DNA of 64,000 nucleotides, from NCBI RefSeq assembly GCF_032191835.1, contig NC_083243.1, forward strand, positions 168,020,001 through 168,084,000, in the 5' to 3' direction. The DNA is from Heteronotia binoei (Eukaryota). The notes below the pieces were generated by a model that worked only from the letters and a program-made list of their open reading frames with translations, made no database searches and was not told the origin of the DNA. The position numbers and the translations under genes are program-made. Positions 9,174-55,960 of the stretch are shown piece after piece (position 1 is the first letter of the stretch; every line of letters starts with the position of its first letter).

Positions 9174-18826
<9,653 letters not shown>

Positions 18827-26752: not shown

Positions 26753-26841
26753 TTATAGCTGTTGCGCAGAACACAAATCATAGTCACTGTCAGAGGAGTA
26801 CTCTAAAGGGTTGGAAGATCTATAGGCTGCCCCTTCCAGAG
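26753..26841 (-). CDS. CD5: CD5 last coding exon
   Basis: cttatcatag|CT; ALEGAAYRSSNPLEYSSDSDYDLCSAQQL*. Confidence 0.95.
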
Positions 26842-29800
26842 CTATGATAAGAAACAAGCATTCTTAGCGTCAAAAGCTGCTACATCCTAGAGAAATGCCA
26901 AGTGTAGAGACGAAGGGCCAAACCAGACACAATAGAAAAACCCATGTTTAATTGTGCTTTTTGTTTGTTTGTTTTAAAACAAAAGCCCAGCAGGAACTTA
27001 TTTGAATATTAAGCCATACCCCCTGATGTCACCATTGTTTCACACAGAGCTTTTAAAAAAATATTAGGCCACACCCCCTGATGCCAAGCCAGCTGGAACT
27101 GCATTCCTGTGTGTTCCTGCCAAAAAAAAAGCCCTGTGTGTAATTTATTCATGCTTTCCCCCCATTCATGTGGAAGGTGGAGAAGGCGGAGTCTGTGTTG
27201 TTCCCCCTCCCCGAAATGGAGCACTTGAGCAAGAGGAGCTTAAACCCTGCACGCTCTTTCCCTGATCAGCCACTTGTGTCTCATGTAAAGTTTCTCCTGA
27301 GGATCAGAGAACCTTTCAGAGTGGAGTCTGATGTTATATGGAGGTGTGCTACTACCAGGGATGGGGGAATTGCTGAGGACCCACCTTCCCTCTTGCCCTC
27401 TGCAAGCTTAAGCAGATCTTTGTATGCAAGGTGTTATTTCTCATGTTAGAATCTGCCCAGCACCTCAAGTATATTAATTAGAGAAAGGTGGGTAAGGAAT
27501 AGAAAACATAATAATCACAGATATAATAAAAGCCTTACGGGTGACTCAATCCTCAATTTTTATTGAAAGTTGTGGCTAGCACAGGAGTGGCTTTGTACTC
27601 TGTCACCACTCCCCATGTCATTGGGTAGCCTTGCTGTGACCCGCCTACTGCTGGCCCTGTCAGGCCAGAACCTCATCAGTCAGCCTCTGACCTCTGATGA
27701 AGACAGTTGTCTGCTGAGAGGTTCTCCTGGAGCCTTACTGATTACTATTGCCTTTCCTCAGTCCATCTCCCCCCCTCCCAAAACAATGCTGCCACCATTT
27801 TTCCGCCTCCATCTAACACTGCCCGCCAAAGCTGCACTCACCCAGTACACTCCCCCCACCCCTACTGTTTAGGAAGTGAGGTATTTATATTTATAAATAT
27901 GCCAGAAAATCCTCAAGGGGCAGTATTCCACCTCTTCGTTTACAGCACAGTTTGTGGTTGAATCCAGTGTGAACTAATATCATGTGGCACACATACTTAT
28001 TTGAGTAATATTGAACATTGTTTAATAACTATATACATGGAAGCAAACTCTGACAGAAAACAGTTAAATTTCTTCAACAGAAAAGGAATGTTCCATCACA
28101 ATGGGGGGAGGAGCAGTTCAGCAGAGCAGATAAACAGGCTCTCTATACTCTATATTCTCTATACTCAAACCCCCTTTCGACCTGCAAATGGTTTTCACTC
28201 TTTCTAGTCAAATTAGGCTACAGTAGGCTGCTTGCTTTAAAAGGCAGGAAGCCATTTGAAGGCTCCCTTTCACTTCCTTCCACCTGCAAGTGGGAAGGGG
28301 TGAAAGGCAGGCTTCTAACAACTGCCTGCCTGCTTGCCTATCTTCCTGTCACTTCTCTGTCTCCCTCCCTTCCTTTCCCTTTATTTTATTCTTTTCTCCC
28401 AAACTTTAACACAACTCTCACTTCATTCATTCCTCTCATTCTTTCTCTGACTTTTTCTTTCATTCTGTCTATCTTCCTTCTCCTTTTTACTTCTCTCACA
28501 GGCCTCATTTTGGGCAGGAGCTCACAGAACTGGAGTTCCAGAACCTCTAAATTTTATTGTGATCTTTTTCTTAACCTCCCCCCCCCAAAAAAAATACTTG
28601 CTTCTGGGCTCCATTGTTCAAACCCCCTTTGAGAATTTTGCTGAACTCTTAAGATTTGACAAACTTTTTAATATTTTCCCCCACAAAAAATGGGGAAATA
28701 ACTAAAATATATAAAGCACACAGATAGAAATCTTTATCATGCCACTGTGGCCACACAGGAGAAGGCAATTTTAAAAGTATGATGGGAGTAAGATGACAAT
28801 TATAATTCAAGATGCATGTTAAAGTAGATGCTGAGCTGATATAATTTAGTCCCCCTTCTGGAGATTTCAGGGGTGTGTGGGATATTCAAGAGTTATGCAG
28901 ATGAGTTGTGCTAATGAGCTCTGGCACCTCTTCTTCTGCAAAATGACTCCTGCTCTCACTCCTTCCCCCCTCATTTTTCTACCACCTTTCTGTTCTTTCT
29001 CTGTATCTTTATATTTCATTCTGGCTGTGATCACACACACTAAATAATGCACTTTTAATTAGGGTTGCCAGGTCCAATTCAAGAAATATCTGGGGACTCT
29101 GGGCATGGGGTCAGGAGCAATGTTCCCTCTAAGCTGTGGAGTCTTGTGAGCAAAAATTCTACTTTGTGAGCTACTGGTAATAAAGTTGTGAGCTACTGCA
29201 TACATTATTGTGCTCTGGGGTCATCCTTCCTTAGCTAAGACAAAAAGATGTGAGCTTGAGGCTAAATATCTGGGAGCTAGCTCACACTAGCTTAGCTTAG
29301 AGGGAACATTGGTCAGGAGACTTTGGAGGTGGAGCTAGGAGGCATCAGGGGTGGGGCCAGGAGCAAAGGTTTGGCAACAAGCATAATTGAACTGCAAAGG
29401 GAGTTTTGGCCATCACATTTAAAGGTACCACACACCTTTTAAATGCCTTCCCTCCATTGGAAATAATGAAAGATACCCCTACCTTTTGGGGGGCTCAGAG
29501 AATTGGACCCCCTGGTTGAATCTTTTTGAAACTTGGACACTTTTTTGAGGAGAGGCACCAAATGCTATGCTGCAAATCTGGTGCCTCTACCTTAAAAAAC
29601 AACTCCCCTAGAGCCCCAGATACCCACAGATCAATTCTCCACTATACCCTATGGAAATTGGTCGCCATAGGGAATAATGGAGTACCCAACAGACATTTCC
29701 CTCCCCCACACACACTTTCTGATGACCCTAAAGCAGGGGAGGGCCTCAAAACTGGGGGATCCCCTGCACCCACCTGAGGATTGGCAACCCTACTTTCAAT

Positions 29801-32656
29801 CCACTTCCAGTGAACTTTCTAACTGGGTTTTACTTTGGGTTGAAATAGAGGGCCCAAAAGGCAATTTAACTATGGGAGTTTGTTATCACACACCAAATCA
29901 AAAGATAGAGGATGACTATAATATGATGGAAGGCTTAAAGATGGTGGCTAGACGTAAAAACTGTGTCATCATAGGTGATTTTAACTACCCGCAGATTGAT
30001 TGGGTCAATATGAGTTCTGGTCGAGAGACAGAGATTGAGTTTCTAGATGCTCTCAGTGACTGTGCTATGGAGCAGATGGTCACAGAAACTACCAGGGGTG
30101 GGGCGATCCTGGATTTGGTCCTAAGTAATGCCCACGATTTAGTGAGAGATGTAAAAGTGATCGCATTGCTTGGGAGCAGTGACCATAACGTTATTGATTT
30201 CACCATTTGTATAAATAGAGAGTTGCTCCAAAAGACCGGCACAACCATATTTAACTTTAAAAGGGGTAAATTCTCTGAGATGAGGAGGCATGTGAAGAGA
30301 AAACTGAAAGGAAAGGTAAATACAGTCAAAACCCTTGGGGAAGCTTGGAGGCTATTTAAAACTACAATCCTAGAAGCTCAGATAAAATATATACCACAAG
30401 TTAGGAAAGGCACAAACAGGTATAAGAGAAGGCCTGCACGGTTAACAAACAAAGTAATGGAAGCTGTAAAAGGTAAGAAGGACTCCTTTAAGTGGTGGAA
30501 GGCTAATCCAAGTGAAATTAATAAAAGGGAACACAGGCAGTGGCAAATCAAATGCAAGGCTGTGATCAGGCAGGCAAAAAGGGACTATGAGGAGCATATT
30601 GCAAAAAACATAAAGACCAACAATAAAAATTTCTTCAAATATATTAGAAGCAGGAAACCAGCCAGGGAGGCAGTGGGGCCCTTGGATGACCAAGGGGGTC
30701 AAAGGATTACTGAAGGAAGATAGGGAAATGGCTGAGAAGCTGAATGCATTTTTTGCCTCCGTCTTCACTGTGGAAGATGAGAAGTGTTTGCCTGCTCCAG
30801 AACCACTTATATTGGAAGGGGTGCTGAAAGACCTGAGTCAGATTGAGGTGACAAGAAAGGAGGTCCTACAACTGATAGACAAATTAAGAACTAATAAGTC
30901 ACCAGGTCCGGATGGCATACATCCAAGAGTTCTGAACGAACTCAAAGTTGAACTTGTGGATCTTTTGACAAAAATATGTAATCTTTCATTGAAATCTGCC
31001 TCTGTTCCTGAGGACTGGAAGGTAGCAAATGCCACCCCCATCTTTAAAAAGGGTTCCAGAGGAGATCCGGGTAACTACAGGCCAGTCAGTCTGACTTCAA
31101 TACCGGGAAAGTTGGTAGAAAACATTATCAAGGACAGAATGAGTAGGCACATTGATGAACACGAGTTATTGAGGAAGTCTCAGCATGGGTTCTGTAAGGG
31201 AAGATCTTGCCTCACTAACCTGTTACATTTCTTTGAGGGGGTGAACAAACATGTGGACAAAGGAGACCCAATAGATGTTGTTTAACTTGACTTCCAGAAA
31301 GCTTTTGATAAAGTTCCTCATCAAAGGCTCCTTAGTAAGCTCGAGAGTCATGGAGTAAAAGGACAGGTCCTCTTGTGGATCAAAAACTGGCCAGTTTGGT
31401 GTAGTGGTTAAGTGTGCGGACTCTTATCTGGGAGAACCGGGTTTGATTCCCCACTCCTCCACTTGCACCTGCTGGAATGGCCTTGGGTCAGCCAGAGCTC
31501 TGGCAGAGGTTGTCCTTGAAAGGGCAGCTGCTGTGAGAGCCCTCTCCAGCCCCACCCACCTCACAGGGTGTCTGTTGTGGGGGAGGAAGGTAAAGGAGAT
31601 TGTGAGCCGCTCTGAGACTCTTCGGAGTGGAGGGCGGGATATAAATCCAATATCTTCTTCTTCTTCTTCTAATTAACAGGAAGCAGAGAGTGAGTATGAA
31701 TGGGCAGTCTTTGTAGTGGAGGACGGTAAGCAGTGGAGTGCCGCAGGGCTCAGTACTGGGTCTCATGCTCTTTAACTTGTTCTTAAATGATTTGGAGTTG
31801 AGAGTAGGCAGTGAAGTGGCCAAGTTTGCAGATGACACTAAATTGTTCAGGGTGGTAAGAACCAGAGAGGATTGTTAGGAACTCCAAAGGGATCTGTTGA
31901 GGCTGGGTGAGTGGGCGTCAACGTGGCAGATGATGTTCAATGTGGCCAAGTGCAAAGTAATGCACATTGGGGCCAAGAATCCCAGCTACAAATACAAGTT
32001 GATGGGGTGTGAACTGGCAGAGACTGATCAAGAGAGAGATCTTGGGGTTGTGGTAGATAACTCACTGAAAATGTCAAGACAGTGTACGATTGCAATAAAA
32101 AAGGCCAACGCCATGTTGGGAATTATTAGGAAGGGAATTGAAAACAAATCAGCCAGTATCATAATGCCCCTGTATAAATCGATGGTGCGGTCTCATTTGG
32201 AATACTGTGTGCAATTCTGGTCACCACACCTCAAAAAGGATATTATAGCATTGGAAAAAGTCCAGAAAAGGGCAACTAGAATGATTAAAGGTTTGGAACA
32301 CTTTCCCTATGAAGAAAGGTTAAAACGCTTGAGGCTCTTTAGCTTGGAGAAACGTCGACTGTGCGGTGACATGATAGAGGTTTACAAGATTATGCATGGG
32401 ATGGAGAAGATAGAGAAATAAGTACTTTTCTCCCTTTCTCACAATACAAGAACTCGTGGGCATTCAATGAAATTGCTGAGCAGTTGGGTTAGAATGGATA
32501 AAAGGAGGTACTTCTTCACCCAAAGGGTGATTAACATGCGGAATTCACTGCCACAGGAGGTGGTGGCGGCTACAAGCATAGCCAGCTTCAAGAGGGGGTT
32601 AGATAAAAATATGGAGCAGAGGTCCATCAGTGGCTATTAGCCACAGTGTGTATATA

Positions 32657-32689
<33 letters not shown>

Positions 32690-35600
32690 TTTTTGGCCAC
32701 TGTGTGATACAGAGTGTTGGACTGGATGGGCCATTGGCCTGATCCAACATGGCTTCTCTTATGTTCTTATGTTCTTACTGTGTGGACTGGCAAAATCTAG
32801 ATGGAAAGTGCTTTGAAACTGGATTGAAATGGCATTATTTAATGTGTGTGATCGCAGCCTCTGTCTGTCTACCTTCCTTTCTTCCATTTCTCTTTGGCTG
32901 TTTCTACACTTGGCAGAAAATACTGTCTGTGCATATTTAAAAGTAATCATTTACATTGCGTATTCTTCTGTCTTGCTTTGCAATTTCTTAAGTCTTTTAA
33001 ATTTATTTTTTTGAATGGGCAACAAAAACGCTTTCACCCTGGAGTTGCCCTGCAGTTCTCAAGTGTACTTTTGAACAGGAGTTTTCCTGAACAGCAGATC
33101 TAACTTTGTAATTGTAGAACTTTCCCTCCAAGTTTTAAAACTCCTCCCCAAAGCCCCATCCAACGTTCACTTGCGAGAGAACTGATTCAGGAAGTCACTA
33201 GGTGCGCTGCTCAGAAGTGCGTTGACTTCTGAAGTGTGTGCTCTCCTCCAAGCAGGACTTCCTTCACAAGGAAAGCCCAGCTCAGAGGAGAATGCCCCTG
33301 CCTGGCTGCTGTTGTTTTCAAGGTGAAGGCAGCTGGGCAGGGCTTTGGTGTAGCTTCTCTGAGCCGGGTTTCCCTTGCAAGGGAGGCCCAACTCAGAGGA
33401 GAATGTGCCCCGCCTGGCTGCTCTTGTCTTCAAGGTGAACGCAGCCAGGTGGAGCATCAGTGTGGCTTCTCTGAGCATAACTTGGAGGAGAACGCTTCCA
33501 CAGTGCACTCTCGGAGGTGCTCTGTGCCTCCTAGAGTGCACTGTGCAGGCCTGGCTCAGCTGCAGCCTGCCCATCCCTCCTTCCACACCGCTGTGCCTGT
33601 TCTCTCTATGGGCAGGGGTGCGACAGCAGGGCAGATGCAGTTGAGGGGCACAGGACAGGTGTTGGCCTGGGGTGCCCAAGGCCCTAGCACTGGGCGTGCC
33701 AGGGTCCTGGGCAGGTGAAAGAGATGGTGGCAAAGGAAGACAACCTCCAAATGGCTCAGTAGATCTGGAACAAAGCTGAATGGGGAAAGGATCTTTCACT
33801 CTTTTCTCTCCCATCTTTTCCCTACCATTCTCTCTCTCTCTTTCATTCTGTTTATCTGTCTTCCTTCCTTCCTGCCACCTACATATTCATCACACCCCTC
33901 CCGAATATTTTTTCTAGGGTCCGCTGTATTTCTTCCTACAACGGGTTTTACTGTAGCCTTCCCAAGCCTCCCGCCCTGGCGGGAGAATACTGGATTTTCA
34001 GCCTCTTTTCCCGCTTTCCATAACTCTGGAAGCGGGGGGAGGAAGGGGGAATGGCGCCAAGGAGCATTTGCGTCGTCCGGGGAGGAGGTGCTGAGCCTGG
34101 CAAGGGAAATCTTGAGAAGGGAGGCTGGCTCGCCAGCGAGCGGGTGGAGGTGGCTGCCGAACGCAGGCGGGTCTTGACGGACTCCAATGCCCGATGCTTC
34201 TCCTCCTCCCTTCCCTTCCCACCCAGCCCCGTTGCAGCAGCCGTTCTTCCTTTTCGCAAGCTGCTTCCCGCGCCCAGTCAGCTGGCTGGGGGGGGGGGAG
34301 GAGAGAAGCCCCGCCTGCAAAGGACCATGTGCCTTTGCACCTCCGGAGGCTTGATTGCAAGGCTCCACTTTGGGATGGTGTGACTGCTGCTGTAAAGAAG
34401 CTGGCAGCAACTCGTGAGTAGAAAGGCCAGTCCCTCGCTTCAGTTGCCAGAAAGGGGGGGGGGAGGGAGGAGGAGAGGGAAACGTCTTCATTATTCCCTA
34501 TGTGGAGATCAATTCTCATAGGGTATAATGGGGAATTAATCTGGAGGTTTTGGGGGCTCTGGGGGAGCTGTTTTTTGAGGTAGAGGCACCAAATTTTCAA
34601 TATAGTATCTAGTGCCTCTCCCCAAAGTACCCTCCAAGTTTCAAAACGATTGGACCAGGGGGTCCAATTCTATGAGCCCCAAAAGAAGGTGCCCCTATTC
34701 TTTGTTATTTCCTATAGAAGGAAGACATTTTAAAAAGTGTGCTGTCCCTTTAAATGTGATGGCCAGAACTCTCTTGGAGTTCAATTATGCTTGTCACACC
34801 CTTGTTCTTGGCTCCGCCCCAATGTCTCCTGGCTCCACCCCCAAAGTCTCCTGGCTCCTCCCCCAAAGTCCCCAGATATTTCTTGAATTGGACTTGGCAA
34901 CCCTATTTTACTGCTAGTTCATAATAATATATGAGGGACATTCTGGAACTCTTCCCTCAGGAAGAAGAGACTTTCCAATCATTGTGGGTGCCAAGGTTGT
35001 GAAATACAGATAACGTCTGGCAACTGGGAAACCTCCTGGTCAGTTTTGCAATTGACTATTCTTTTCAGGAACAAATCATATTTTAAGAGCTATTTCATTT
35101 CCATTTCTACAAATTGTAACCAGAATTATCATTGGGACTCTTTGAAATAACATGGACAAACCAGTGGTGGTACAAAAAAAGAGATCTTGTGCTATAGACA
35201 GAAAATTTTTTATACCCTGTTGATTTTTGCTACCTGGATACGGTGAGAGGTAAGAATTTTTGTTGAGGTCTTGAGCATAGCCTTTCTCCTCATCCTGAAT
35301 CCCTTGGCTTTCAGGTCGTGCATGGAAGGCTGAGGAGCTGTTGCGATGGAAGGAAACTAAAGAAAAGCATGGTCCAGAATTAGTAATTACTCCCTACCCA
35401 AAGCAATAATCAGTCTTACGCTCTAAACACATATTTTATACTCAGTTAAAAAACTGAAATTCAGAGCTGCATGCAGGGCTTTTCTTGCAGAAAAAGCCCA
35501 GCAGGAACTCATTTGCATATTAGGCCACACCCCCAGACATCATTATTGTTTTACACAGGTTTTTTTTGTAGAAAAAGCCCAGCACAAACTAATCTGCATA

Positions 35601-38600
35601 TTAGGCCACACCCCTGACACCAAGCTAGCCAGAACTGCGTTCCTGCTCAAAAAAAGCCCTGACTACATGTAAATGATGTTAATGAAGGGCAAGAGCAGAA
35701 TAAACTGCCATTCATGCCGTTCCATTTAAAAAACAAAAAAGCACTTTCTTGGGAGTAAGCCCCATAGTCCTGAGAAATATTCTAAGTCAGGGTGGCCAAA
35801 GTATGGCTCTTTCATACATATTGTGTGACTCCTGGAGGTTGAGGAGGAACTTATTGCAGGCTTACATTCAAATAAGCATGCATAGCATTACGACCTCAGT
35901 CAGCCTCTGAGCGTTGCCGCACAGGTAGGCAACTATTTCTGCTGTGTATGAAATGGGGAATGAGAGGAAAATAGGCAGGCTTGCAAGCTCTTCTCCTCTA
36001 CCACAGAGGTTGTCCAGAGGCCTAGAGCAGGGAAAGAGCACAAGAGCCAAGGGAGCCACTGGAAGGAGGAACAGAATTAAAGAGGGTGGCACAGGGTTCC
36101 TCCTTAGTGTTATACCTCTTGTAGGAGCTGTATTGACTAACCTTCGTGTCAAGGCAAAGAGAGATGTATAGTTGGCTTGCCAATCCTCAGGTCCCAGCAG
36201 GGGTTCTTCTGCTTTCCCAGGCTCCTTCCCGCCCCCAGTCAGCTGACCGGCGGGGGGAAGCCCCGCCCCCACAGAACCATGTGCCTTTCCACCTCCGGAG
36301 GCTTCACTCTCCGATTGAAAGGCTTCCTCTTGGGATGGGGGGGTGTCTGTGTTACGTTGAAGAAGTTGGCAGCAACTCATGAGTAGAGAGGCCAATCCCT
36401 CGCTTCAGAGTCGCCAGAAACCGGGTGGGGGAGGGAAACGTCTGCTGAACACTTCATTATTCCCTAGGTGGAGATCGATTCTCATAGGGTATAATGGGGA
36501 ATTGATCTGGAAGTTTCACGGGCTCTGGGGGAGCTGTTTTTTGAGGTAGAGGCACCATAGTATCTAGTGCCTCTCCCCAAAATACCCCCCAAGTTTCAAA
36601 ATGATTGGACCAGGGGGTCCAATTCTATGAGCCCCAAAAGAAGGTGCCCCTATCCTTCATTATTTCCTATGGAAGGAAGACATTTAAAAAGGTGTGCTGT
36701 CCCTTTAAATGTGATGGACAGAACTCCCTTGGAGATCAATTCTGCTTGCCACACCTTGCTCCTGGCTCCACCCCAATGTCTCCCGGCTCCACCCCCAAAG
36801 TCTCCAGATATTTCTTGAATTGGACTTGGCAACCCTAATATATAGTAATGCAGACGGTGGTCAGGGAGAAGAAAACACATATGGTACATGTGTATTTCCT
36901 TCTTCCACTGGTGCCAAAAAATAATTCCCTAACCTTTCCCTATACTGGTCTTATGGGGACTGTTATTCTCAGCTTTTGTTTTTAAAAAAGTCTCCTTCTA
37001 GTTGTGTTGTAAAGTGCATAAATATGTATTTTACCTTCCTGTGCAAAGAAAGTATTAAAGAGTTTTAATAAAGATATGTGAGTAATATTTGTTCATGCCT
37101 TGCGGCTCTCAAACATCTGACGTTTATTCTTAATGTTAAGCAAGTTTAGCCATCACTGTTCTAAGACCTGCTTCTGAAACTTGTATAGCTGCCAAGCTAG
37201 TTCCTGCCTCTAGAGGGAGTAAAAGCTCATACTATGATTAGTCACACATCAATCTAAAAAAACCCCCAAGATGGGAGTTTCTCTAGATTCTGCCACCATG
37301 TTTCAAATGTAAATATAAATTGTGAAATTGGGATTATTGGACTGAATCTCTGTGTGTAACTACCAGAAGGGGCATTTTCTGAACTGAACAAGTAACATCA
37401 TATTTACAACACTGTTGCACATTTTGACTGCCTACAGTATAAAATTGAAATCCTGATAACATATTATACTGAAATCCTCATATGCGCTAGGTAGCTTGTG
37501 AAATTCTGTGCACTTGGTGGAAACATTTTTCTTCTTCCAAGTTGCTAATGGTTACCTTTTAATGTGTGATTTATTCTCTTCCTTGATTTAATGTGCTTTT
37601 TAGTGGTTTTAAAACTATGTTGTGATGTTTTTGCTAAGTGTCATTTTATCATTTTACTATTTTGTAACTGCTGACTTTACTGCTGCTATTTTAAAGTAGT
37701 TTTAAACATAATTTTGAATTGTTGCTGGTTTTATGAGTTCTTTATTGTGCTCTGAGACAAGAAGTTCAATGTAGCTAGGACTCTGCAATCGGAAACTTGC
37801 TTGGAATGTCAAGACTAGCTGGGGGTATGAATTGATAATAAAGAATGGGGTTATCTTGGAACTTTCAAAAAGTACCTTTGCTTCATTAAGTAATCACAGT
37901 TTATATGCTGGCTGGAATGTCTTCTTGGCAGTCTTATGCCTAGATAGTCTTATTTCTAGTAATTAACCCTGTCTTCTGAGCCACTTAACATATTTCATAG
38001 AAACCTGGATGTTCTGAACTTTGTGGCTGTAAGTTTTCATCCTGATCCTTTGGGAAGCAGGGAAGATGTAGACATCAGCACAAATGTACAATGGCCAAAT
38101 TTAATAATAGAAATGCTAGAATTTTCCAGTCACATGTTTTCCCTCTGGTTAGCACACCCAGGGATTTGCTTTTAGTTCGGTGGTTCAAATAAGAGTTTGC
38201 TTTTCTGCTGTTAAAGCTGGTACATGGCCCACTAACTGTTGGACTATAACTGAAAGATGCCATTCTTTCCCACACTCTATATTTCTGAAATGCTTTTCAT
38301 GATAAAATAGCAAAATACTGAACAATATCTTTGCTGGAAGCAAGCCTCCAACACTTCCAGCAATACTGTATTTGTAAACATTTCTTTTATGTAATGCAGG
38401 TTTAAAGAGGCATCAAGTTGGTTGGCTTTAAGGGAAACCTCTGCTCATGTTGTGGTTATTCTCTGTAAACCATTTAACAAATTGGTTGACCAATAGCCAT
38501 CCTGTTACCAAGTCAATGAATCCAAAGGCGTACCCATCAGAGACCAAACTGACCACAGTAGCACTTTAGATGCTATCAACAGCGGCAACAGTGTTAGGGC

Positions 38601-41600: not shown

Positions 41601-44600
41601 ACTATGCTGGAAAGGTTGAGAGGAGAGATGTGTTTCCATTGAGATCCAAGTCCAGTTTAAGAGCAGCTGGGAGGGGCTCAGGGTAGGAGGCAGGAGGTGA
41701 GAGACAGGATGGTGTTACTTAGTTACAGCCTTCAAAAACAGCCACAGCCCATACAAATAGGCCAGTAAACTGAGAGCCATTCCACATAATATGCAGAATG
41801 AGCTGGGAGAGATAGAGTTCTGGACTGCACCACTTCAGACTCCAGGTAGGTGTGGAGGGGGGGGGTTCATATTTTTTAACATTCCCCTGTGCAAAACTTT
41901 TCCCTGCATGTTTTAAGATAATACACAGACAAACAGGTTTAGCACAGCCCTTTCCTTGACTTACTAAATGTGTTAAAAATTGTATATGTAAAGAAGAATT
42001 TTACAAAATGACTTCCTACTTGCAGTCTGAAATGGTACAGCTCACTATCATTTCACTCTCATTTACTATTCCGATTATACTGCTTCTGACCCCTTTGCCT
42101 GCTTCTTGTAATAGTGAATTAATATTACAAGCCAATTTCTTCAGAATTCAAGGAAGGAAAAGCAGCCAAGAATCTGTGTATGTTCTCCCAGACAGTTTCA
42201 CTCACCTGAACATTTTAGTAAGCTTATACTCAAGCATTCCTTGGTTCGGTTCAAGCACTCCAAGCTAAGGTTCATTTTTTCACACTGCACCTTTGCCCAC
42301 TGCTCAGGCTGCTGCATCTTCCCCTGGTCCTTTATTTCTATTGAGTCATCACAGTCTGCTTCCTGGCAGATCTTGGGGGCCAGTTTTGTCCACCATCTCT
42401 GTAAGTGCATGCAGACCATTTCCTGGCTGTCTCCTAAGTGCTGTCCTGCTGTCCCAGAGCATAGTGAGGTTACAGCTTCTAATCTGGTCCTAAGGAGGTC
42501 TTATGAGAAAGACAGGGGAAAATTAAGTCCAATGCACCAACAAGTAGTTGTGGTTAACAGCATCCAGTACCAACTGGTCAGTCCCTGGATCAAATCTAAA
42601 CACTCTTCATAAATTTACTGAACAATCTTACAAAAGTAATTATCTACATTGTAGGTGCTGTAGAATAAATATACAATAATTCAACCTCAATATTCTCCCC
42701 TGCACCTGCAAATTGGGCAGACATGGGGTTCAGATCCCTCACTTAGCCATCAAGTTTCCTGGGTGACTTTGACACTGCTTAGCCTCTCACAGGGGTGTTG
42801 TGAGGATAAAATGGAAGCAGGGAACACCATGAAGGCTGTCCTGAATGAGAAATGAATTAGATCTATATTAATACTAATCAAGATCCATTGTAAGGAAGAA
42901 AAATTGTGTGAAGCATTTGACTATTTAGGAAATGCACCAAGGATAGATCAACAGCCCTTCTTGGCCTAGTGCAAAGATGGCCAATCTGGACAGAACACAG
43001 AGGGCTGATCATTCTGGCTGTGAATCAGACCTACTGCCTATCTCATGCTGAGTTGCTATCTATTCCCTAGCTCAGTGCATTAGACAAAAAAAAAAAGTCA
43101 TAGTAAGACCCATGCGACTGCATATGTAATGTAGTGGGACTATGGGACATGATTTGTGGCACACTTTCCAAAGAAGCTGGTCATCATTGGTCTCTAGGAC
43201 TGTTGTCTTCATCCTCTTTAGTCAGTACCGATGGTGGTCTTTTTCACTGGTCCAGGTATGCCTTTTATAAGAACATCATAGTGGAGGCAATAAGCCACAA
43301 TCAGAACAGAAATGCAAGATGTCAGATAAGTAACTTTCTGGATACCACCATCTCCATGCTGTCCCCATCTTCAGATGTCTGCAAATTATCTTACATTTTA
43401 CAGGCCCATGGCAAGTAGCTATTCGCAGTAAGGATAAACTTGTCGTATGCCAGGGACATCGGATTTCTGATTTTTCTCTGTAAATCTCCACTTCCCACCT
43501 TCATTTTTATTCTGAGATTATATTTTTATCACAATTATAATGGATCACTTTCAGCAGTAAAGATGGCGGTGGGATTGTGCATTATTATTTTCTTACCAGG
43601 AGTCGTTGAGGAGGTCACCAATGGTGCTGATGTCTGGAGTAATCCAGAGAAGATTTTAATAGGATCTGAAATGACAAAACCCAACATATTTTAAGAGGAA
43701 AGAGAGATCAACCAAAGAAAGAACATAAGAGAAGCCATGTTGGATCAGGCCAATGGCCCATACAGTCCAACACTCTGTGTCACACAGTGGCAAAAAAGAG
43801 GAGTTTCATAAGTGGGGCTAGAAGCCCTTCCACTTTGCCCCCCCCCAAGCACCAAGAATACAGAGCATCACTGCCCCAGACAGTTCCAATAATATGCTGT
43901 GGCTAATAGCCACTGATGGACCTCTGCTCCATATTTTTATCCAAACCCTTCTTGAAGCTGGCTATGCTTGTAGCCACCACCACCTCCTATGGCAGTGAAT
44001 TCCACATGTTAATCACCCTTTGGGTGAAGAAGTACTTCCTTTTATCCATTCTAACCCAACTGCTCAGCAATTTCATTGAATGCCCATGAGTTCTTATATT
44101 GTGAGAAAGGGAGAAAAGTACTTCTTTCTCTACTTTCTCCATCCCATGCATATCACGTCACCCGCAGCCAATGTTTCTCCAAGCTAAAGAGCCCCAAATG
44201 TTTTAACCTTTCTTCATAAGGAAAGTGTTTCAAACCTTTAATTATTCTAGTTGCCCTTTTCTGGACTTTTTCCAATGCTATAATATCCTTTTTGAGGTGC
44301 GGTGACCAGAATTGTACACAGTATTCCAAATGAGACTGCACTATTGATTTATACAGGGGCATTATGATACTGGCTGATTTGTTTTCAATTCCCTTCCTAA
44401 TAATTCCCAGTTCCCTTCGTAATAATTCCCATGAGAGATGAAGAGATGAAGACTGCTGTAATATCTTAACAGTGGTAATGACCAATGTTTTGGTAGTGGT
44501 GTGATCTCAGTATCACAGCCTGGCTTGCAAGCAAGCAAGTTAAAGATGAATCAGCCATAAGTCTTGCTCCTCTTATATAGTTTTAAGAGGCTGCCCACTT

Positions 44601-47600
44601 TTTAAAAAGTGTATTGAAAGCAGTTTCACTCTCATGAAAACTTTTTGAAAGTGCTGAAAAGTGCTCTGGAGGGTGGGGTGGGGGGTTAGCTGTATTGATA
44701 CAGGTATAGGTGAAAGCCAATAGCTACCCTTCTTCACTAGCTTTTCTGTTCAAACTCCACCACACTGAAAATGTGTAAAAGCAGTTTGTCAGAGCTTTCC
44801 CCAGAATAGGATAAGGTTTGTTTATATTGAAAACAGTCAAGGGTATTTTTAATGCACCCCTACTTGTTTGAAATGTTTGTTTTATACACAGACAGAAGGA
44901 ATCAAAGAATAATAGTATTACCTTGACAGAGTATGGCCACATTCACATATTGCGTGCAGTTAGATGTATGTAGTTTGCAGTCCTTCAGGGCAATTTCATC
45001 CCCCTGGCAGCCTATTTTCATGCAATCTTCTTGTGTGTTCGGTGTTGTAGAAGTCTGATTCAGTGTGCCCCAAAGGGGACCACAGTGAAGCTGTTTACAT
45101 GCAACTTCTGCATTCTGCTGCTTCCAACTGTTGCTATGAATTCTTTTCAGTTTGTCTTGGTGAAAAATCTCCAGCCATCCAAAACATCTTGAGTGGCCAG
45201 TGAGTCTCACATTCCATTCCATCAGGGAAGCATTAAGACACTGGCCACCTAGACAGAAACAAAACAAGAAGCATAGGTTTCTTCTTCATCTTGGTGCTAT
45301 CAGCCCAAGACCTCTACCTCTCCTTTCCCAGAGCTGAATTCTCACATTCAGGGCTTTTTTTTTTTTAGCAGGAATGCACAGGAATGCAGTTCCAGCTGGC
45401 TTGGTGTCAGGGGTGTGTGGTCTAATATGCAAATAAGTTCCTGCAGGGCCTTTTCTACAAAAGAAGCCCTGCTCACACTTGAGATGAGCAAAAACATTTT
45501 GGCTTGAGATGCACGTGTATCAGCAGTTACAAGCAGCTTAGAGAAAGAATGCTTCAACACAAGGTAGGTTTCTCCAGGAATTCTGAATCAGCTATGCCCA
45601 ACTGCTTTGCAGTAATGTGGGAATAATAGTATATGGGGATGAGTAGGCAGTATATTGCCTACATAATCATATTAAAAAGTTTAACAAAGTTTAATTCTGG
45701 GTACAAGCTTTTGTGTGCATGCACACTTCTTCAGATACATTGAAACAGATTTACTCAAGCCTTACATGTATGTGTGGGTTTTATTTGCCAGGAAGGGCTA
45801 GGAAGAGTCAAGATGCACACGTAACTGAGCAAAAAGTAAAACTAAGATTGAATTAAAGCAATTGGGATGACCTGTGAATAGCAGCAAATTAGCATACAGA
45901 TAATAAAAGTTAACAACAGATGTGAGAATTGAGTCCAGTGGCACCTTAAAGACCAAAAAAAAATTCTGGATATAAGCAAGAACTGGTTATTGAAAAGGGC
46001 AAGTGTTCCTAGGTTAGGACGATAGTCCTCAACTTGTACAACTTGAAAAGTTTCCAGTCTGTTTTTGGATCAAAATCAGAGTGCTGGCTTTAATGCCCTA
46101 AAATTTGGCGCAAAAGTAATTTAAATGCCACCTTTATTCACATGACAACTATTAGACAAGTCATGCTGTGGTCCCCTGATAACAGAAGTGTGGCATGTAG
46201 TAACATGGCTCTTGGTGGTTGTACTGGGACTCTCTCTCTCTTTTTTTTTTTGCCACTGTGTGACACAGAGTGTTGGACTGGATGGGCCATTGGCCTGATC
46301 TAACATGGCTTCTCTTATGTTCTTATGCTGCAGTTTCAACTATCCTGGCTTTCAAGAGGCTAGTGAAGATAATACTTTGGGGATACATTGAAATGGGCTT
46401 GTTTTATTTTTGCCAATGTGTTTCATATTTATTCCACAGTGCTTAAAACTGAAACCAGCTGATGTTAGAGCAAATGTCTTTTGCCTTGAAAATTCTAGAG
46501 TTGCCATAAATTGGCTGTTTCTTGAATGCACTTTCTACCACCACCATATTGGAAGGGTAAGGGGATACTCTAGAATTTTGATGGCAATTTCAGCAAAAGG
46601 GTTTTTTTTTAGCACTAAAGGGCTTTTTAGGGATGCTCTACAAAAAGGGAAATGGTAGAAGTAAACAGGTGCCAGTAATCCAAGTGTGAACAAAGTGCGG
46701 AGTTATGCCAGTGCACTAAACAATTGCACAGGATGCCTCTGTGTATATTTTGTTACTTATTGGAAGATCTTGTGTTTGTGCACTGCTTCCTAATAAAAAT
46801 ACTTGAAACAACTAGTGTTAGGACTGTGGAAACTTTATGGATTATTAGTCAACATGTCAATTCTCAGTACTGCTAAATTGCATGCCTTCAATTGTGCAAA
46901 TGGGCTTTGTTATACAGGCTCTTTGTTGATCTCTTTCTCTGGATTTATATGAAGCTTGGTTCTTTAATTATCATTGTTTTCTGACCCCCTAATCTATAGC
47001 TCCCAGTAATGCCCCCAGAAAGTCTACTCCATCCATCCAAGTCGGTGCAGAATTAATCCTTTGCTCTGGTTAACACACATACTTAAATTATGGAATTGCT
47101 TGCACTTTCATAGGAAAGTTAAATGTTTATCTCCTTTTGGTCTCTTATAATCCACAGGCTGAGCAAACATATAGTCAAAGCTTTTCCAGAATTTTGCTGA
47201 CTTCATAACTCATATAGACAAGGATCTAAAGAGCCCTCACTGTGTGCAAAGCAGATTGTGGGGCATTAGGGACTCCAGCAGGATGCGAGAGGCAAACAAG
47301 CCATCCTTCGCGGCCAGAAATTCTTGCTGCCATGGAAACTCTGCTTTGGATCCAAGCCATTATGTTGTACCCGGCTGGCCCTGGCTGCTTGCATGACCAA
47401 CAGGTCCATGGTGACTTCTGATACCAGCCATCAGCGGCCTATCAATAAACTTATCTTCTGGCAAATGATCAACGTTAGCAGACTGACATGCAGCCTGTCT
47501 TCTCTGCTGTAGGCCAATATCATTCCTACAATATTAGTGGAGTCACTTTGTTATCTGATGTAAATGAAAATGGATCTTTTCATGTCACAGTGTAATGAAT

Positions 47601-50600
47601 TTCAAGAGTTTCAATAAGCTTTGCAGGGTGAATGTTAAACCTGCATTGGCTCGAAGGCTTGTTTGCATTACAAGCATCTCTGTCTCTGCCACATGAATAA
47701 TCACGTAGAGGAAAGGTGTTTTAGTGACAGCATTCTGTCATTTCAAACATGACAGTGGCTCAATTCAAACACCATTTAATTAACTTAATTATGGTTAGTG
47801 TGATAATCTGAACACAGGTCCCTCTGCTATTTCATGTATATACATGACCATGTAAGTCACCCTGAGCCTGCTTTGGCGGGGAGGGCGGGATATAAATCAA
47901 AACAAACAAACAAACAAACAAATAAATTATAGCTAGGATATGTCAAACTAGAATCTGAAACCATGGAGAAGTTGGTTTTAACAATGATTGGGTGTGATGA
48001 TCTTGGATTCATCTGGATTTGTTTCCCTGTACTGCCCTCACACATTCCCTAGCAACAGAGATACCTGATCAGTGAAAGAAATGAAACCACTATGTCAAAG
48101 CAAACCAGGATTCAAGTAATTTTTTTATTTCACAAACTAAGAACACAATCCGGGGGGGGGGGGGGTGGAAAGTATTTTGGAAGCAGACGAGCTGGTATGT
48201 GGGCTCAGGAAGGGTTTGCGCCGGCGTACGACTGGCGCCGCCAGAGCAGAGGTATATGGGCGGGGGGCCGCCTGAGCGGTGCCCCGCCCAAAGGCAGCAG
48301 CTCCTGAGGCTGCGCCCGAGTATGGGCGGAAGTGAGGCGTAGCACAATTTTCAGGTGGAGGAGGGGGTGGAGTTGGGGACGCGGCCAGGCTTAGGTGGCT
48401 TCCTGAGCAGTTTGGCCCATGACACGCCAGCCCCCGAGAGGTGCAACTTTATGCCTGCAAAAATGGCAGCGTGTCCCATAGGCACTCATTGAAACCAAAA
48501 ACAAAGGTCGCCGCCACCGCTGCGGAAGCTCGGAAACCCCTTAGGGAGTGGCGTGATTGCCTCAGCAATCCCCTTGCAGCTCGGGCTGACGAGCCCACTC
48601 CCCATCACCTAATCGCGGTCTCCCGCCTCCTAGAAATGCTTCCGCTCTGGCCTCGCACAACTCAGTTGTTAGAGAAAAGAGCGCATGGCAGGAAGTTCTG
48701 CCAGCGAGCTCCCGGCCATATGGACTTAGAGTGAGGGACAGGCAGGCACATTGGTGATGGGTTTTGCACCTCGCAGTTACTTTGACAGTATCTTTGTCTT
48801 GCGAGGGGGAGAGAGAGGTCTCTTCCCTGGGGCTAACTGCTCTTGATTCCAGGTCTCCACAGCTTCTGGGCTCCTGGAGGCTCTGCATGCAAGAACTGTC
48901 ACCCATAGCTGGGTAAGTTCCACTGCCCCTCCCCGCCTCCTCCTCCCCTCGCTCTCGACCGCTCGGTGTGTGAGTGTCTCTGGCACATGAACCAGGCAGT
49001 GGGCTTCAGCAGGGGGCATCTGCTGACCCCGCTCCCCTGTGCTGCCACCTGCTCCCTGCCCTTGGTCTGCCCTCTGCCATGTTCTCAGCCCCTGGCAGGG
49101 CACGAGATGTGTGTGTGTGGCAGCTGCCCCGTTGTGGGGAAGTGAGTCAGAGACTGTCCCTTTAAGTGAGCGCCTGGCTGAAACGCAGCCCACTCTTCCA
49201 GCCGCTGCCCCTGCAGGTGCTCTTGATCCCTATCTCCATTTTGCAGGTGGGAATCCAACACAGAGGCTTCCGCGTGTGCCGCTCCACTGCCTCCCCACTC
49301 CCTCAGTTGTTTCTGCCTGCCGCTCAGAATGGAGCGCCGCCCATGGCAAGACTGCCCAGTGCACTCCAGGGAGACTGCTGCACTCTGTTCTGGAAAAATA
49401 AAGTCTGAGCTGTGCCCTCTGTTGTCTCTCCCGCTTGGCATCTGCTGCACATTCCCTGGGCAACTCCCCCCCCCCGTCAGTGGCCACTCCGAGGGAATGC
49501 CTGGGAAGGAATGCCTGGGCAGATTTGTTTTTGGTGAGGGGGGGAATGGTCTATGAGCTGCCATGCTGCCCCCCGCATGGCTGGACAGGGGAGGGGAGTG
49601 CTGCCACTCAACCTGCCTGGGCTGACAGCCTACCCGACCCACAGGGCTGTTGTGCGCAGGGCACTAAGGAAGGGCTGATGAAGTGGACTCAGAGTTCTGC
49701 AGCTGATGCACTCGCACTCTGAGTTCTGCAGCCCCCAGGGGAGGTGTTCTGTGCACATGGCAGGGGGCGTCAGGGCAGCACAGGGGGTCTCTGGGTGTGG
49801 GAGTGTCTACTGCTGGGCTGCTTACTTCCAGACACACATTCCAGCCACTGTCTATGACAGCGAACTCCTGCACTTGGTACTTCCTGCTTGTCTGCCTGCC
49901 ATTGGCAGAGTCTCTGACAGCGGGAGGGTGTGAGGGGATTGATGGCTTCCCTGTGGTCCCATGCAGGCCTGTCTCACCTCCACCTGCACCTTGCCACCAA
50001 GCCAGGCTTCTAGTGCGCACATGCCCAGCCTCACTCCTGTTCCCTCCCCGTGTTGGTGGGCCATCTCTCCTTTGCCTGTGATGGTGTGCCCATCATTGGC
50101 TCCGTTCTCTGTTTGGGGGTGGGTTGGGGTTGCCTCTCCCCATCCCTGACTGTCATGAGCCGTGGCGCATGCGCCAGGACTGGCCAATGTGTGTGGGGTG
50201 GTGGTCTGGCCCTCCCCTCCAGCTGTCTCCGCCTCCCTTCCATGCCTCTGCCAGTGGCGTTGCCATGGTGACCGTCTCCCTCATGGCAAGCTACGCCTCT
50301 CCCCTCCCCACGCTCCAGCATGTCGAAGTCCTCAGGAAGTCTACTAGCGGCGCGGCAGCTACACCGTGGCCAGCCGCCCCTTATCTCTGGATTGGGCTGT
50401 AAGCATAGTTAAAATTAAACAATGTTTTGTGTTACATCTGAACTGAGCCACTATCATGCATTATGCAAATGTTTGAGTGCTGTAAATGAAGAGAGGCACT
50501 TCTTGGTTTTAGGAACTTGATTTAAACCAGAACTACTTGATATAGCAGATGAGAAAGTGCCTTGAGTATATTCAGTGAACATATTAACTGTTTGTGTGTT

Positions 50601-53600: not shown

Positions 53601-55808
53601 TCGTGGATGGGTGACATGCACAATACATTATTATAAGCTGATCTTTGCAAATCTTATTTGCATGTGTTTCAATGTATATTATAACAGCACATTGAGGGCA
53701 GTACCTACAAGTCACTTATAGTTCTAAATAAATATTATATAAGTTACTATACTAGCTGAAGGCCGTAATGTAATTATGTAAATATGGTAATGTCATGCTT
53801 CAGGATTTTAGCTCTGTTGGTATTTTTAGCACAGTTTACAAATGACAAGAACAATATGTGCACACCTGCTTTGTTCCTTCATGTTTAAACAATTCAGTGC
53901 AAACTGTTTGTTTCCTTACTTTGATTTTTGAATTGTAACCTAAGATCTGTCTGAACATGCAAGTAGTACTAATTTAGTAATGATCTCCAACTAACTAACT
54001 AAAATGATTGGCATAGTATTGTGCTGAAATAAAAATTAGGTCCTCGCTGACCATTGCTAATTTTTGTTATACAAATTCTATTCTAAACGAAACATAAATG
54101 GAGGATGAGTAGATAGTAGAGGTTGTCATGGTGGACAAGATAATTATGTAGAGTAGGTGGATGGTTAAGAGCAAATCCTTAGTCCAAATAAATGGTAAGG
54201 GTTCATCAACAACTTTATGTCCACAGTGCTAATTCAGATGTGGCCATAATCAGTGGCTTCAATAAAGAATGCAGGACTGAAGTGATTTTTTAAAATATTT
54301 TGGGTTCTGTCTGTCTATTTTATCCTAGTCTCCCTCCGCAGGGCTCAAGGAGAGGTAAATTGTTGTAGCCTGTTTTCATTGGGTTGGATCCATCAGATGA
54401 AGACACCACTTTTTTTAAAAAAAAAAATACTCGTTACTTTATCATAGAATTGTGATTTGTATACATCTGGGTACATATTGACCTTAGAAATGTTTATTAT
54501 AACAAAACACATAATTATTTGCTACATTCAAACAAAAGAGCAACTGAGACAATCAATACTAAGTTATAAATATTCTGCAGAGGACACATCATCTGCTGGT
54601 TACTTTGGACGCTGGAAAGATGTGATGTACTCACCAAAGATCTGACTGACAGCTCAATCGTAGGCATGTTTACTCAAAAGTAGTTCTCAAGAAATGTAAT
54701 GGAGTTTAAGGATTACAGCCTTAGGCAATGGCTGCAGAAAATCAGAGCAGCCTCAAAGGAATGAGACTGGTTCACAATGCCCTGAAGACAGATACCAATT
54801 TATTAAATTTGAACCCACATAATCAGTTAGGAAGGCTGATATTACCAATAAAAACACAGTTTAAAACTTACAGTTAGCTACAAAGAATATGCAATAAGTC
54901 AGTACGCAAAATCTTTAATGAATACAGTTATAATCAATCTCATTCCAGGCCTTCTTTAAAAAGAAAGGCCTTGATTAATTTTTAAAGCCACCATGAGACA
55001 TGGCCACATGCACTTTTCAGTGGTTCCAAAGAAGGCCCCAAGATGCTTTTCACCATACTATTATGAATGCGGGTATGTAACACAGCCTCCTTATAGTGCA
55101 TTCAGGACAACATATGGGGAGAGATATCCCTCCAGATATCCTGGAAGCTGGCCATTATTGGCTCTAGCATCAGGTGGCTTCACTCAGCCAACTGAGGATT
55201 GTTGCCAGATAAAGCTCTGTTAATATGTGTTTACTGCACACACCTCCAAGGGACATGACATTTCTGTATGCACTCCAGAGAAAAGAGAGCTGCATAATGC
55301 TGCTCAGCATTTCTATAGTACATTTCCTAAATGCTCAACGCATTTAATATAGATTTACTCAGTCATTCTGACCACAGATGGACCAACACCGTTAGCTTCC
55401 CAATAGACCAGGAGCAAGACTAGGAATGAAGCAGAGAGACAGTGGGCTGCTGAAGGCAAGCCAGAGAGGTTACATCTCAGTTGATATTTTAAATGGGGAT
55501 TACTGATGCATAGCTCATCACTATGTTACAGCAGCATGTGATCAGCATCCCTGTAGACTCTTTTCTTGCATGCACATGTGTTTGTCTGCACACATACAAA
55601 AGACCATACTTATTCCATGCATGAAAGAGTCTTTTGGTACTGTGTGCCTGTTAAGTCCCATCAAGTCCCTTTCAACATGTGGCAACCTTATGGATTAATG
55701 ACCTCTAACACATCCTGTTGTTAACACCCTTGCTCAAGTCTTTTGGTACTACTCACCCCATATCCCCACCAACATCAATGGGATAAAGGCTAGATGCTTG
55801 AATCTCAT
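26753..55808 (-). CDS. CD5: T-cell surface glycoprotein CD5, spliced CDS complement(join of 55808-55757,45248-44922,43665-43597,42499-42206,40333-40211,39344-39291,35356-35234,26841-26753), 376 aa
   Basis: Signal peptide, SRCR, T/S/P linker, SRCR, TM ending PLAYKKL, then cytoplasmic KKKQHQWIGPNGVNQN, SFHRN and SSDSDYDL, all diagnostic of CD5. Every intron is GT-AG phase 1; 1131 nt total. A donor 14 nt after the stop (26739/26738) implies a non-coding last exon. Confidence 0.93.
28499..28952. mobile_element. Non-autonomous hAT-like element
   Basis: Approximate TIRs caggcctcattttg / caaaatgactcctg; TSD ambiguous. Confidence 0.5.
29060..29792. mobile_element. hAT MITE with TAGGGTTGCCA TIRs, containing a nested MITE
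   Basis: TIRs 29060-29070 and 29782-29792; 8-bp TSD CTTTTAAT/CTTTCAAT (7/8). Confidence 0.85.
29118..29311. mobile_element. Nested hAT MITE (194 bp)
   Basis: Perfect 18-bp TIR CAATGTTCCCTCTAAGCT; perfect 8-bp TSD GTCAGGAG at 29110-29117 and 29312-29319. Confidence 0.92.
29830..32770 (+). mobile_element. CR1 LINE, near-complete ORF2 (APE endonuclease plus RT), disrupted
   Basis: GDFNYPQIDW, LDLVL, SDH, PGPDG, QHGF and FADD motifs over ORFs 29677-30723, 30686-31285 and 31897-32421; frameshift near 30700, stop at 31283, SINE insertion; (ATGTTCTT)n 3' tail. Confidence 0.93.
31392..31670 (+). mobile_element. Squam2-like SINE inserted in CR1
   Basis: Flanks rejoin to aaaaactggc-taattaacagg; (TCT)n tail. 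Confidence 0.9.
33954..34905. mobile_element. hAT MITE of the TAGGGTTGCCA family with a divergent left TIR
   Basis: Perfect TSD TTTTACTG at 33946-33953 and 34906-34913; right TIR TGGCAACCCTA; left end TAGCCTTCCCA. Confidence 0.85.
35234..35356 (-). CDS. CD5: CD5 cytoplasmic exon (123 nt)
   Basis: ttttctttag|TT; VSFHRNSSSAFHARPESQGIQDEEKGYAQDLNKNSYLSPYP; G|gtagca donor. Confidence 0.93.
35474..35661. mobile_element. Short hAT-like MITE (CAGGGCTTTT TIRs); related copies at ~26980-27136 and 45349-45471
   Basis: TIRs cagggctttt / aaaaagccctg; TSD 6/8 here and 7/8 (CTCACATT/CTCACACT) for the 45349-45471 copy. Confidence 0.75.
36172..36837. mobile_element. hAT MITE related to 33954-34905
   Basis: Long shared internal sequence; TSD ATGTATAG/ATATATAG (7/8); right TIR 36827-36837. 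Confidence 0.85.
39291..39344 (-). CDS. CD5: CD5 cytoplasmic exon (54 nt)
   Basis: ccttgttgcag|AT; YSKKKQHQWIGPNGVNQN; G|gtaaga donor. Confidence 0.95.
40211..40333 (-). CDS. CD5: CD5 transmembrane exon
   Basis: tgtctccag|GC; QDAKPVSYTETILRILLGLVLTAVFLVICVPLAYKKLANK; T|gtaagt donor. Confidence 0.93.
42206..42499 (-). CDS. CD5: CD5 second SRCR exon (294 nt, 8 Cys)
   Basis: ctttctcataag|AC; DLLRTRLEAVTSLCSG...MVC...KICQEADC...VQC...LEC...KEC...LKCS; G|gtgagt donor. Confidence 0.9.
43597..43665 (-). CDS. CD5: CD5 Thr/Ser/Pro linker exon (69 nt)
   Basis: gtcatttcag|AT; DPIKIFSGLLQTSAPLVTSSTTP; G|gtaaga donor. Confidence 0.85.
43719..44410 (-). mobile_element. CR1 3' fragment in a CD5 intron
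   Basis: ORF 44153-44485 shares RKGIENKSASIIMPLYKS...HFPYEERLK with the 31897-32421 ORF; aagaacataagagaagcc tail. Confidence 0.9.
44922..45248 (-). CDS. CD5: CD5 first SRCR exon (327 nt), including the end of the leader
   Basis: tttctgtctag|GT; GGQCLNASLMEWNVRLTGHSRCFGWLEIF...ACKQLHCG...AILCQ; G|gtaata donor. Confidence 0.92.
45701..45738 (-). ncRNA. Hammerhead-like motif with G12A core substitution (Penelope-like relic, ~45680-45975)
   Basis: GUAU-CUGAAGA-A-GUGUG(CAUG)CACAC-AAAA-GC-UU-GUAC; nearby ggtctttaaggtgccactggactc terminus on the minus strand at ~45930-45955. Confidence 0.5.
46244..46327 (+). mobile_element. CR1 3' tail fragment
   Basis: gccactgtgtgacacagagtgttggactggatggg...atgttcttatg. 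Confidence 0.8.
48141..50399. mobile_element. GC/CpG-rich 2.26-kb candidate non-autonomous PIF/Harbinger-type element in CD5 intron 1
   Basis: TAA on both flanks (48138-48140 and 50400-50402); ends GAACACAATCC vs CAGCCCAATCC (8/11 as inverted repeats); abrupt GC shift relative to flanks; no recognisable transposase. Confidence 0.5.
51380..51600 (-). mobile_element. tRNA/core-type SINE; related copies at ~56700-56920 (+), ~57100-57240 (-) and ~42720-42860
   Basis: ctcacaacaagcctgtgaggtaggttagg...cccaaggtcacccagc...gaacctgggtctcc motifs with a (ttta)n tail. Confidence 0.7.
52490..52644 (+). mobile_element. 5S rRNA-headed SINE with RTE/BovB-type tail
   Basis: gaagctaagcagggtcgg...tacttggaagggagac matches the internal part of 5S rRNA with a deletion; tail gccataagtcagc...ggcacttta(ca)n. 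Confidence 0.7.
55757..55808 (-). CDS. CD5: CD5 exon 1 (signal peptide)
   Basis: ATG 55808; MRFKHLAFIPLMLVGIW; G|gtgagt phase-1 donor compatible with the SRCR1 exon. Confidence 0.85.
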
Positions 55809-55960
55809 CGGCTCGTTCCTCCTCATTCGATCATCTACAGATAGCATGGTTTAGTCTTTCCCCTGATGCTTCTGCTACCTGCTATGGGCAAAAGGAGGGG
55901 GGCTGGGAGGAAGACAAAGTGCCTTTTTCCTCCTGATGTGGTTGTTTGCGTCATATCTCA
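55809..55960 (-). promoter_or_regulatory. CD5: Putative CD5 proximal promoter / 5' UTR
   Basis: Immediately 5' of the ATG; RUNX TGTGGTT 55937-55943, CRE/AP1-like TGCGTCA 55947-55953, GGAA cores; no TATA box seen. Confidence 0.5.

Follow-up and report, generated by a model that had tools for sequence, protein, structure and literature searches.

CD5 is a surface glycoprotein of T cells and B-1a-like cells that negatively tunes antigen-receptor signalling. It has been described as a receptor with three SRCR domains (PMC5983667, PMC13204495), and a paper from 2026 still presents both CD5 and CD6 as a tandem of three such domains (PMC13204495). Here, we analysed the CD5 gene of the gecko Heteronotia binoei in a stretch of 64,000 nucleotides (NCBI RefSeq assembly GCF_032191835.1, contig NC_083243.1, positions 168,020,001 to 168,084,000 of the forward strand), which is called the window in the following and in which all positions are counted from its first letter. 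According to our analysis the window holds a single intact CD5 gene, lying apparently tail-to-tail with a gene of the VPS37 family, which encodes the first SRCR domain (D1), a linker and the second SRCR domain (D2), and the third, membrane-proximal domain (D3) was probably lost on the lepidosaur stem. To this reading as a whole we assign a probability of about 90%. Three tandem SRCR domains were found neither in the gecko gene nor in any lepidosaur CD5 model retrieved.

Lepidosaur CD5 resembles the three-domain CD5 of mammals, birds, crocodilians and turtles in being an orthologous gene that appears to adjoin a VPS37-family gene, in devoting one phase-1 exon to each SRCR domain, and in the succession of D1, a Pro/Ser/Thr linker, D2, a transmembrane (TM) segment with the motif C-x-P-x-x-Y-K-K and a cytoplasmic tail with the motifs WIGP, SFHRNS, SxYxALEG and SDSDYDL. 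However, it differs by the absence of the membrane-proximal D3 and by a D2 with eight cysteines instead of six. A comparable shortening is known from the human CD6 delta-d3 splice isoform, where the membrane-proximal SRCR domain is removed by the skipping of one symmetric exon and the tail is unchanged (PMC6305463). In contrast to lepidosaur CD5, CD6 delta-d3 is a regulated isoform which exists beside the full form and is devoid of the CD166-binding domain (PMC6305463), whereas in lepidosaurs the exon is gone from the genome and the short form is the sole form. Short forms of CD5 itself have been predicted in turtles: the 380-residue isoform X2 of Dermochelys coriacea is without D3 and has exactly the lepidosaur architecture, and the 367-residue isoform 3 of Pangshura tecta is without D2. 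Unlike lepidosaur CD5, these isoforms represent alternative transcripts, predicted for a gene in which the D3 exon is retained, and they suggest that either SRCR cassette can apparently be skipped in frame in three-domain species.

Direct reading of the minus strand gave an intact CD5 gene of eight exons, in which all introns are in phase 1 and every junction conforms to AG/GT (Table 1). The leader exon offers three in-frame ATGs, at 55847, 55826 and 55808. When counted from the ATG at 55808 the coding exons add up to 1128 nucleotides or 376 codons, and a start at the RefSeq ATG at 55847 yields a protein of 389 amino acids. All exons are 100% identical to the public protein of this length, "T-cell surface glycoprotein CD5 [Heteronotia binoei]". 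Seven exons were matched at this identity in a tblastn search with public CD5 and the linker exon, which encodes 22 amino acids, was recovered by blastp; exons of the window were searched singly, and public CD5 proteins were used for all work on the whole protein. An earlier note, made from the letters of the window, had proposed a CD5 of 376 amino acids with an in-frame chain of phase-1 exons for leader, SRCR, linker, SRCR, TM segment and three cytoplasmic parts. Both the gene identity and the exon chain agree with the reading and the public model, and the upstream ATG at 55847 is the only difference between the two models. Gecko CD5 is an ordinary gene for its clade and is correctly annotated.

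To search for a third SRCR exon, hidden Markov models (HMMs) were built from CD5 domains of crocodilians, turtles and birds (89 of D1, 108 of D2 and 100 of D3) and run unfiltered on the 2788 stop-to-stop pieces of at least 15 amino acids that the six frames of the entire window provide. The D1 HMM matched the SRCR1 exon at 2.8e-17 and the D2 HMM the SRCR2 exon at 1.5e-07; the latter exon obtained 0.11 with the D3 HMM and 0.048 with the D1 HMM. The D3 HMM was significant only at SRCR1, where its value of 5e-06 reflects generic SRCR similarity. A third SRCR exon was not found, as in the six frames of the 64 kb the custom HMMs for D1, D2 and D3 matched the two known exons alone. The next matches of the D3 HMM, with E values of at least 0.02, were rejected as short, cysteine-driven chance similarities on the wrong strand or distant from the expected intron, and the best of these (E = 0.022) covers 28 residues on the opposite strand. 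On the DNA level the 279-nucleotide D3 exon of the turtle Caretta caretta had no nhmmer match in the 64-kb window. The D2 exon of the same species, which served as control, matched 42233-42495 at 8.7e-07, showing that the nhmmer search can see homology at the turtle-gecko distance. The protein and DNA searches therefore bear out the claims of the earlier note that there is no third SRCR exon and that only two SRCR domains are encoded.

As RNA evidence, Logan contigs from three runs were used. One contig of 201 nucleotides (depth 4.1), which came from a metatranscriptomic run, was informative. Of its length, 102 nucleotides lie at 40231-40332 and stop at the boundary of the TM exon. The only other depth in that run was 0.78 in the bin 42064-42237 and 1.56 in the bin 42238-42411, which corresponds to 4.1 x 33/174 and 4.1 x 66/174 and places the remaining 99 nucleotides at 42205-42303, where the SRCR2 exon has its 3' end. 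The contig thus appears to splice the D2 exon straight to the TM exon, which gives direct, though thin, RNA support to the junction from 42206 to 40333 that the earlier note had predicted. An interspersed repeat at 43719-44500, in the intron between D1 and the linker, accounts for nearly all contigs and draws huge numbers of them with 90-99% identity in all three runs, so that the CD5 RNA signal is swamped.

It is very unlikely that a third SRCR exon was missed, be it too divergent, outside the window or hidden by an assembly collapse, and that the real protein has three domains. This would be favoured by the divergence of D2 itself, which is strong enough for Pfam to miss the domain, as a very divergent D3 might escape likewise, and the RNA evidence amounts to one contig. 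However, D3 is the better conserved domain, since alligator D3 found 2JA4, a crystal chain of D3 from human CD5, with E = 1.7e-15, and beyond the generic match at SRCR1 the HMM built from 100 D3 sequences gave nothing on the correct strand. In addition, the 64-kb window contains zero N, more than 20 independent assemblies agree, and the D2 donor and TM acceptor of the gecko, which the RNA contig joins, are the homologous counterparts of the sites on either side of D3 in the turtle.

The earlier note had left it ambiguous which domain was retained beside D1. By sequence comparison it is D2 that was retained as the second domain, and D3 that is missing. Pfam and PDB could not separate D2 from D3, but the custom HMMs and a tree did. 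The maximum-likelihood tree comprised 66 domains from lepidosaurs, archosaurs and turtles (LG+C20, 1000 ultrafast bootstraps and the Shimodaira-Hasegawa-like approximate likelihood ratio test). In this tree all lepidosaur second domains (15/15) group with the 12 D2 domains with a support of 96/98, D3 forms a separate clade (97/94), and the lepidosaur first domains fall with D1 (91/95). When the second domain was split after the fourth cysteine, the D2 HMM gave the highest score in 29 of 30 tests of the two halves. Furthermore, the D2-specific motif LPVxWE ... (D/E)CFNRT is present in the lepidosaur second domain. When the SRCR2 exon was compared with PDB, the crystal chain of human D3 was not matched at E <= 1, and human CD5 D1 was matched weakly (E = 0.18).

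The eight cysteines and the 294 nucleotides of this exon could argue that the second domain is D3, with D2 having been lost, or a D2/D3 hybrid which arose via unequal recombination, as in three-domain species D3 has eight cysteines and D2 six. We consider this highly improbable, because the tree places the domain with D2 and D3 apart, the D2 motif is present, and on the DNA level the match was to the turtle D2 exon alone. A chimera of D2 and D3 was rejected since each half is D2-like, and the extra cysteines are distributed one per half, so that a single crossover cannot supply both.

The assignment to D2 extends to the other lepidosaurs. CD5 models of about 22 squamates, sampled from geckos, skinks, lacertids, an amphisbaenian, anguimorphs, iguanians and snakes, have 365-425 amino acids and the order D1-linker-D2-TM, and the tuatara model of 386 amino acids is built likewise. 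Three-domain CD5 has 460-478 amino acids in turtles and alligator and about 470-480 in birds. In the alignment the D3 block is empty in 15/15 lepidosaurs, the tuatara included, and filled in alligator, turtles and birds. A search with Varanus CD5 gave 40 matches, all listed, with no three-domain lepidosaur CD5 among them, and the same two-domain architecture was obtained from more than 20 independent assemblies. Among 1.84 billion representative proteins, only six are related to the SRCR2 exon itself; a species name is given for four of them, in each case a squamate. The earlier note had placed the loss in the lineage of this gecko, which proved far too narrow, as all annotated squamate models retrieved and the tuatara share the architecture. 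The absence of D3 in squamates as well as tuatara points to a loss on the lepidosaur stem before these two groups split, an event dated to about 250 million years ago in PMC7393497.

The match between alligator and human D3 indicates that D3 is older than the split of mammals and sauropsids and that its absence is a loss. That two domains are ancestral and D3 was gained in the other amniotes has a practically negligible probability; it is a purely formal alternative to which the analysis lends no support. Alligator D3 is orthologous to human D3 and mammals are the outgroup to sauropsids, so that D3 predates lepidosaurs, and three SRCR domains are likewise present in the paralogue CD6 (PMC13204495). 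The turtle gene indicates how the loss on the lepidosaur stem may have taken place. In Caretta caretta the D3 exon is in phase 1-1; the D2 donor before it and the TM acceptor after it are homologous to the gecko junction, and the codon split at this donor and acceptor (x before and GC after the boundary, then Q-N/D-x-K-P) is identical in both species. Judged from this comparison, the D3 loss is the clean removal of one symmetric phase-1 cassette, as the earlier note had supposed.

A group B SRCR domain comprises about 100 residues from one exon and eight cysteines at canonical positions (C1-C8), of which C2 pairs with C7; human D2 has six cysteines. Both SRCR domains of the gecko are single phase-1 exons with eight cysteines, as in group B. 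Across the sauropsids compared, D2 contains eight cysteines in 15/15 lepidosaurs versus six in 12/12 archosaurs and turtles, and D3 of all three-domain species contains eight; the comparison is one of sauropsids, as the alligator query gave sauropsids alone among the 120 matches listed. The two extra cysteines of lepidosaur D2 occupy the canonical C2 and C7 columns, which are also used by D1 and D3. It was these eight cysteines that made the domain look D3-like in the earlier note: the count is correct, but it is a lepidosaur-wide feature of D2 and not a sign of D3. Both domains keep all eight cysteines in nearly all 15 species compared. The D3 loss and the eight-cysteine D2 might be linked, in that D2, having become membrane-proximal, would have gained or kept the C2-C7 disulfide and would form a rigid canonical SRCR stalk, an idea we regard as rather doubtful.

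In D1 the C2 cysteine is present in just 27% of squamate domains, and in 73% a new cysteine precedes C5 by five residues (DCMKIGC in the gecko). It looks like squamate D1 keeps eight cysteines with a rearranged disulfide pattern.

In the proposed course of events the D3 exon, a symmetric phase-1 cassette in turtles, would have been lost on the lepidosaur stem, and the D2 donor would since have spliced directly to the TM acceptor with the frame preserved. The protein would still tune antigen-receptor signalling via its cytoplasmic tail, like mammalian CD5, and the role which D3 plays elsewhere in amniotes may either be dispensable in lepidosaurs or have been assumed by the remodelled eight-cysteine D2. 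A CD5-like function is suggested by the conservation of the TM segment, the juxtamembrane motif, WIGP, SFHRNS, the tyrosine of SxYxALEG and SDSDYDL. Gecko CD5 has the make-up of a single-pass type I membrane protein with two SRCR domains. The motifs AYKK, WIGP, SFHRNS, SxYxALEG and SDSDYDL are invariant or nearly so in alignments of 13 and 133 sequences, and the gecko has all of them. According to a review, negative regulation is exerted by the tail tyrosines independently of extracellular engagement (PMC5983667, citing Bhandoola et al. 2002) and, in work on mice, inhibition by CD5 needs no ectodomain (PMC5983667). Such ectodomain-independent inhibition by the tail would explain why a module of the ectodomain could be lost.

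A decaying, non-functional CD5 remnant in this gecko would also account for a lost domain, a divergent D2 and the very weak RNA signal across the three runs. This is hardly credible given the intact frame of 376 or 389 codons, the canonical splice sites and the spliced RNA contig. In addition, the eight cysteines are kept in nearly all 15 species and the tail motifs are near-invariant in more than 130 sauropsid sequences.

The first tyrosine of the tail that resembles an immunoreceptor tyrosine-based activation motif (ITAM), lies in the sequence DNDY[AS]Q in tuatara, alligator, turtles and birds. Heteronotia (EKGYAQ) and two further geckos have retained it, and Eublepharis has H in its place. 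In the aligned snakes, iguanians and anguimorphs a deletion of 3-4 residues removes this tyrosine in all cases. No variation was seen in the second tyrosine (SxYxALEG) or in SDSDYDL.

Several points weigh against an intact two-domain CD5 with a D3 loss on the lepidosaur stem. Pfam SRCR (PF00530) matched the SRCR1 exon at 3.2e-14, and for the SRCR2 exon there was no Pfam match at E <= 10. AlphaFold2 modelled D2 on its own, from an alignment of 27 sequences, with a predicted local distance difference test score (pLDDT) of 39. In the model of the full-length public CD5 (133 sequences), D1 had a pLDDT of about 90 and the TM helix was confident, but D2 obtained 34-43. With no Pfam match and a low pLDDT, the assignment of D2 as an SRCR domain rests on its homology to D2 of three-domain CD5. 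The RNA consists of a single contig from one run, the D2 half of which is placed by the depth arithmetic and appears in no listed piece. The support from the tuatara is a single UniProt gene model, the ancestral three-domain state is taken from the PDB match and textbook knowledge, and the function of lepidosaur CD5 is read entirely from conserved motifs.

The two-domain CD5 presented here is a real but modest finding, namely a clade-wide variant architecture of a known receptor. The novelty presumed in the earlier note is weakened, since two-domain CD5 is already the annotated norm of squamates in public gene models. A published account of a two-domain CD5 from reptiles, squamates or lepidosaurs was not found in a literature search that left subscription journals mostly uncovered, so that an earlier description is possible. 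If D3 was lost on the lepidosaur stem and this loss is linked to the eight-cysteine D2, lepidosaur CD5 would be a natural minimal ectodomain of about 250 million years of age that sorts D3-dependent from D3-independent functions. As a natural experiment it suggests that the function for which CD5 is maintained by selection, whichever it is, does not require the membrane-proximal domain, in agreement with the mouse data on ectodomain-independent inhibition cited in the review. The extracellular ligands of CD5 remain disputed. Ectodomains with two versus three domains, and a D2 with six versus eight cysteines, provide a defined comparison to map CD5 ligand binding.

Table 1. Features of the CD5 gene and of the neighbouring VPS37-family gene in the 64-kb window.
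Feature	Position	Strand	Length and properties	Evidence
Leader (signal peptide) exon	55757-55847 (RefSeq ATG 55847-55845) or 55757-55808	-	52 nt when started at 55808	tblastn, residues 1-31 at 100%
Leader phase-1 donor GT	55756-55755	-		Sequence reading
SRCR1 (D1) exon	44922-45248	-	327 nt, phase 1-1, 8 Cys	Pfam, D1 HMM, tree
Ser/Thr/Pro-rich linker exon	43597-43665	-	69 nt, phase 1-1	blastp, 100% to public residues 141-162
SRCR2 (D2) exon	42206-42499	-	294 nt, phase 1-1, 8 Cys	D2 HMM, Caretta D2 DNA, tree
Intron between D2 and TM exons	40334-42205	-	1872 nt	Position of the turtle D3 exon; no remnant detectable
TM exon	40211-40333	-	123 nt, phase 1-1; juxtamembrane motif CVPLAYKKL	100% to public protein
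Cytoplasmic exon 1	39291-39344	-	54 nt; SKKKQHQWIGPNGVNQN	tblastn of public protein
Cytoplasmic exon 2	35234-35356	-	123 nt; SFHRNS ... GYAQ ... NSYLSPYP, ITAM-like tyrosines	tblastn, alignment
Last coding exon	26756-26841; TAA stop 26753-26755	-	86 nt; ALEG ... SDSDYDLCSAQQL	tblastn, reading
Mod_r (VPS37-family) exons	9174-9695 and 18071-18823	+		3.6e-12 and 1.8e-06

The plus-strand gene with the Mod_r exons is consistent with VPS37C in a tail-to-tail arrangement with CD5, the arrangement at human 11q12. CD6 was not seen in the 64-kb window.

Several stretches of the window resemble retrotransposons. An open reading frame (ORF) of 797 amino acids at 11389-13779 on the minus strand contains a reverse-transcriptase domain (RVT_1, 2.8e-37). 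The plus-strand ORFs at 29677-32421, which fall into the intron that separates cytoplasmic exon 2 from the last exon, resemble a long interspersed nuclear element (LINE) with its arrangement of endonuclease and reverse transcriptase. An ORF fragment of LINE type lies at 44153-44485 on the minus strand, within the repeat at 43719-44500, and has a near-copy at 31897-32421 on the plus strand. The regions at about 33200-36400 and 48000-50400 are GC-rich and show recurring peptide themes and, on both strands, long ORFs that overlap; they are probably repeats or CpG-rich elements in CD5 introns.

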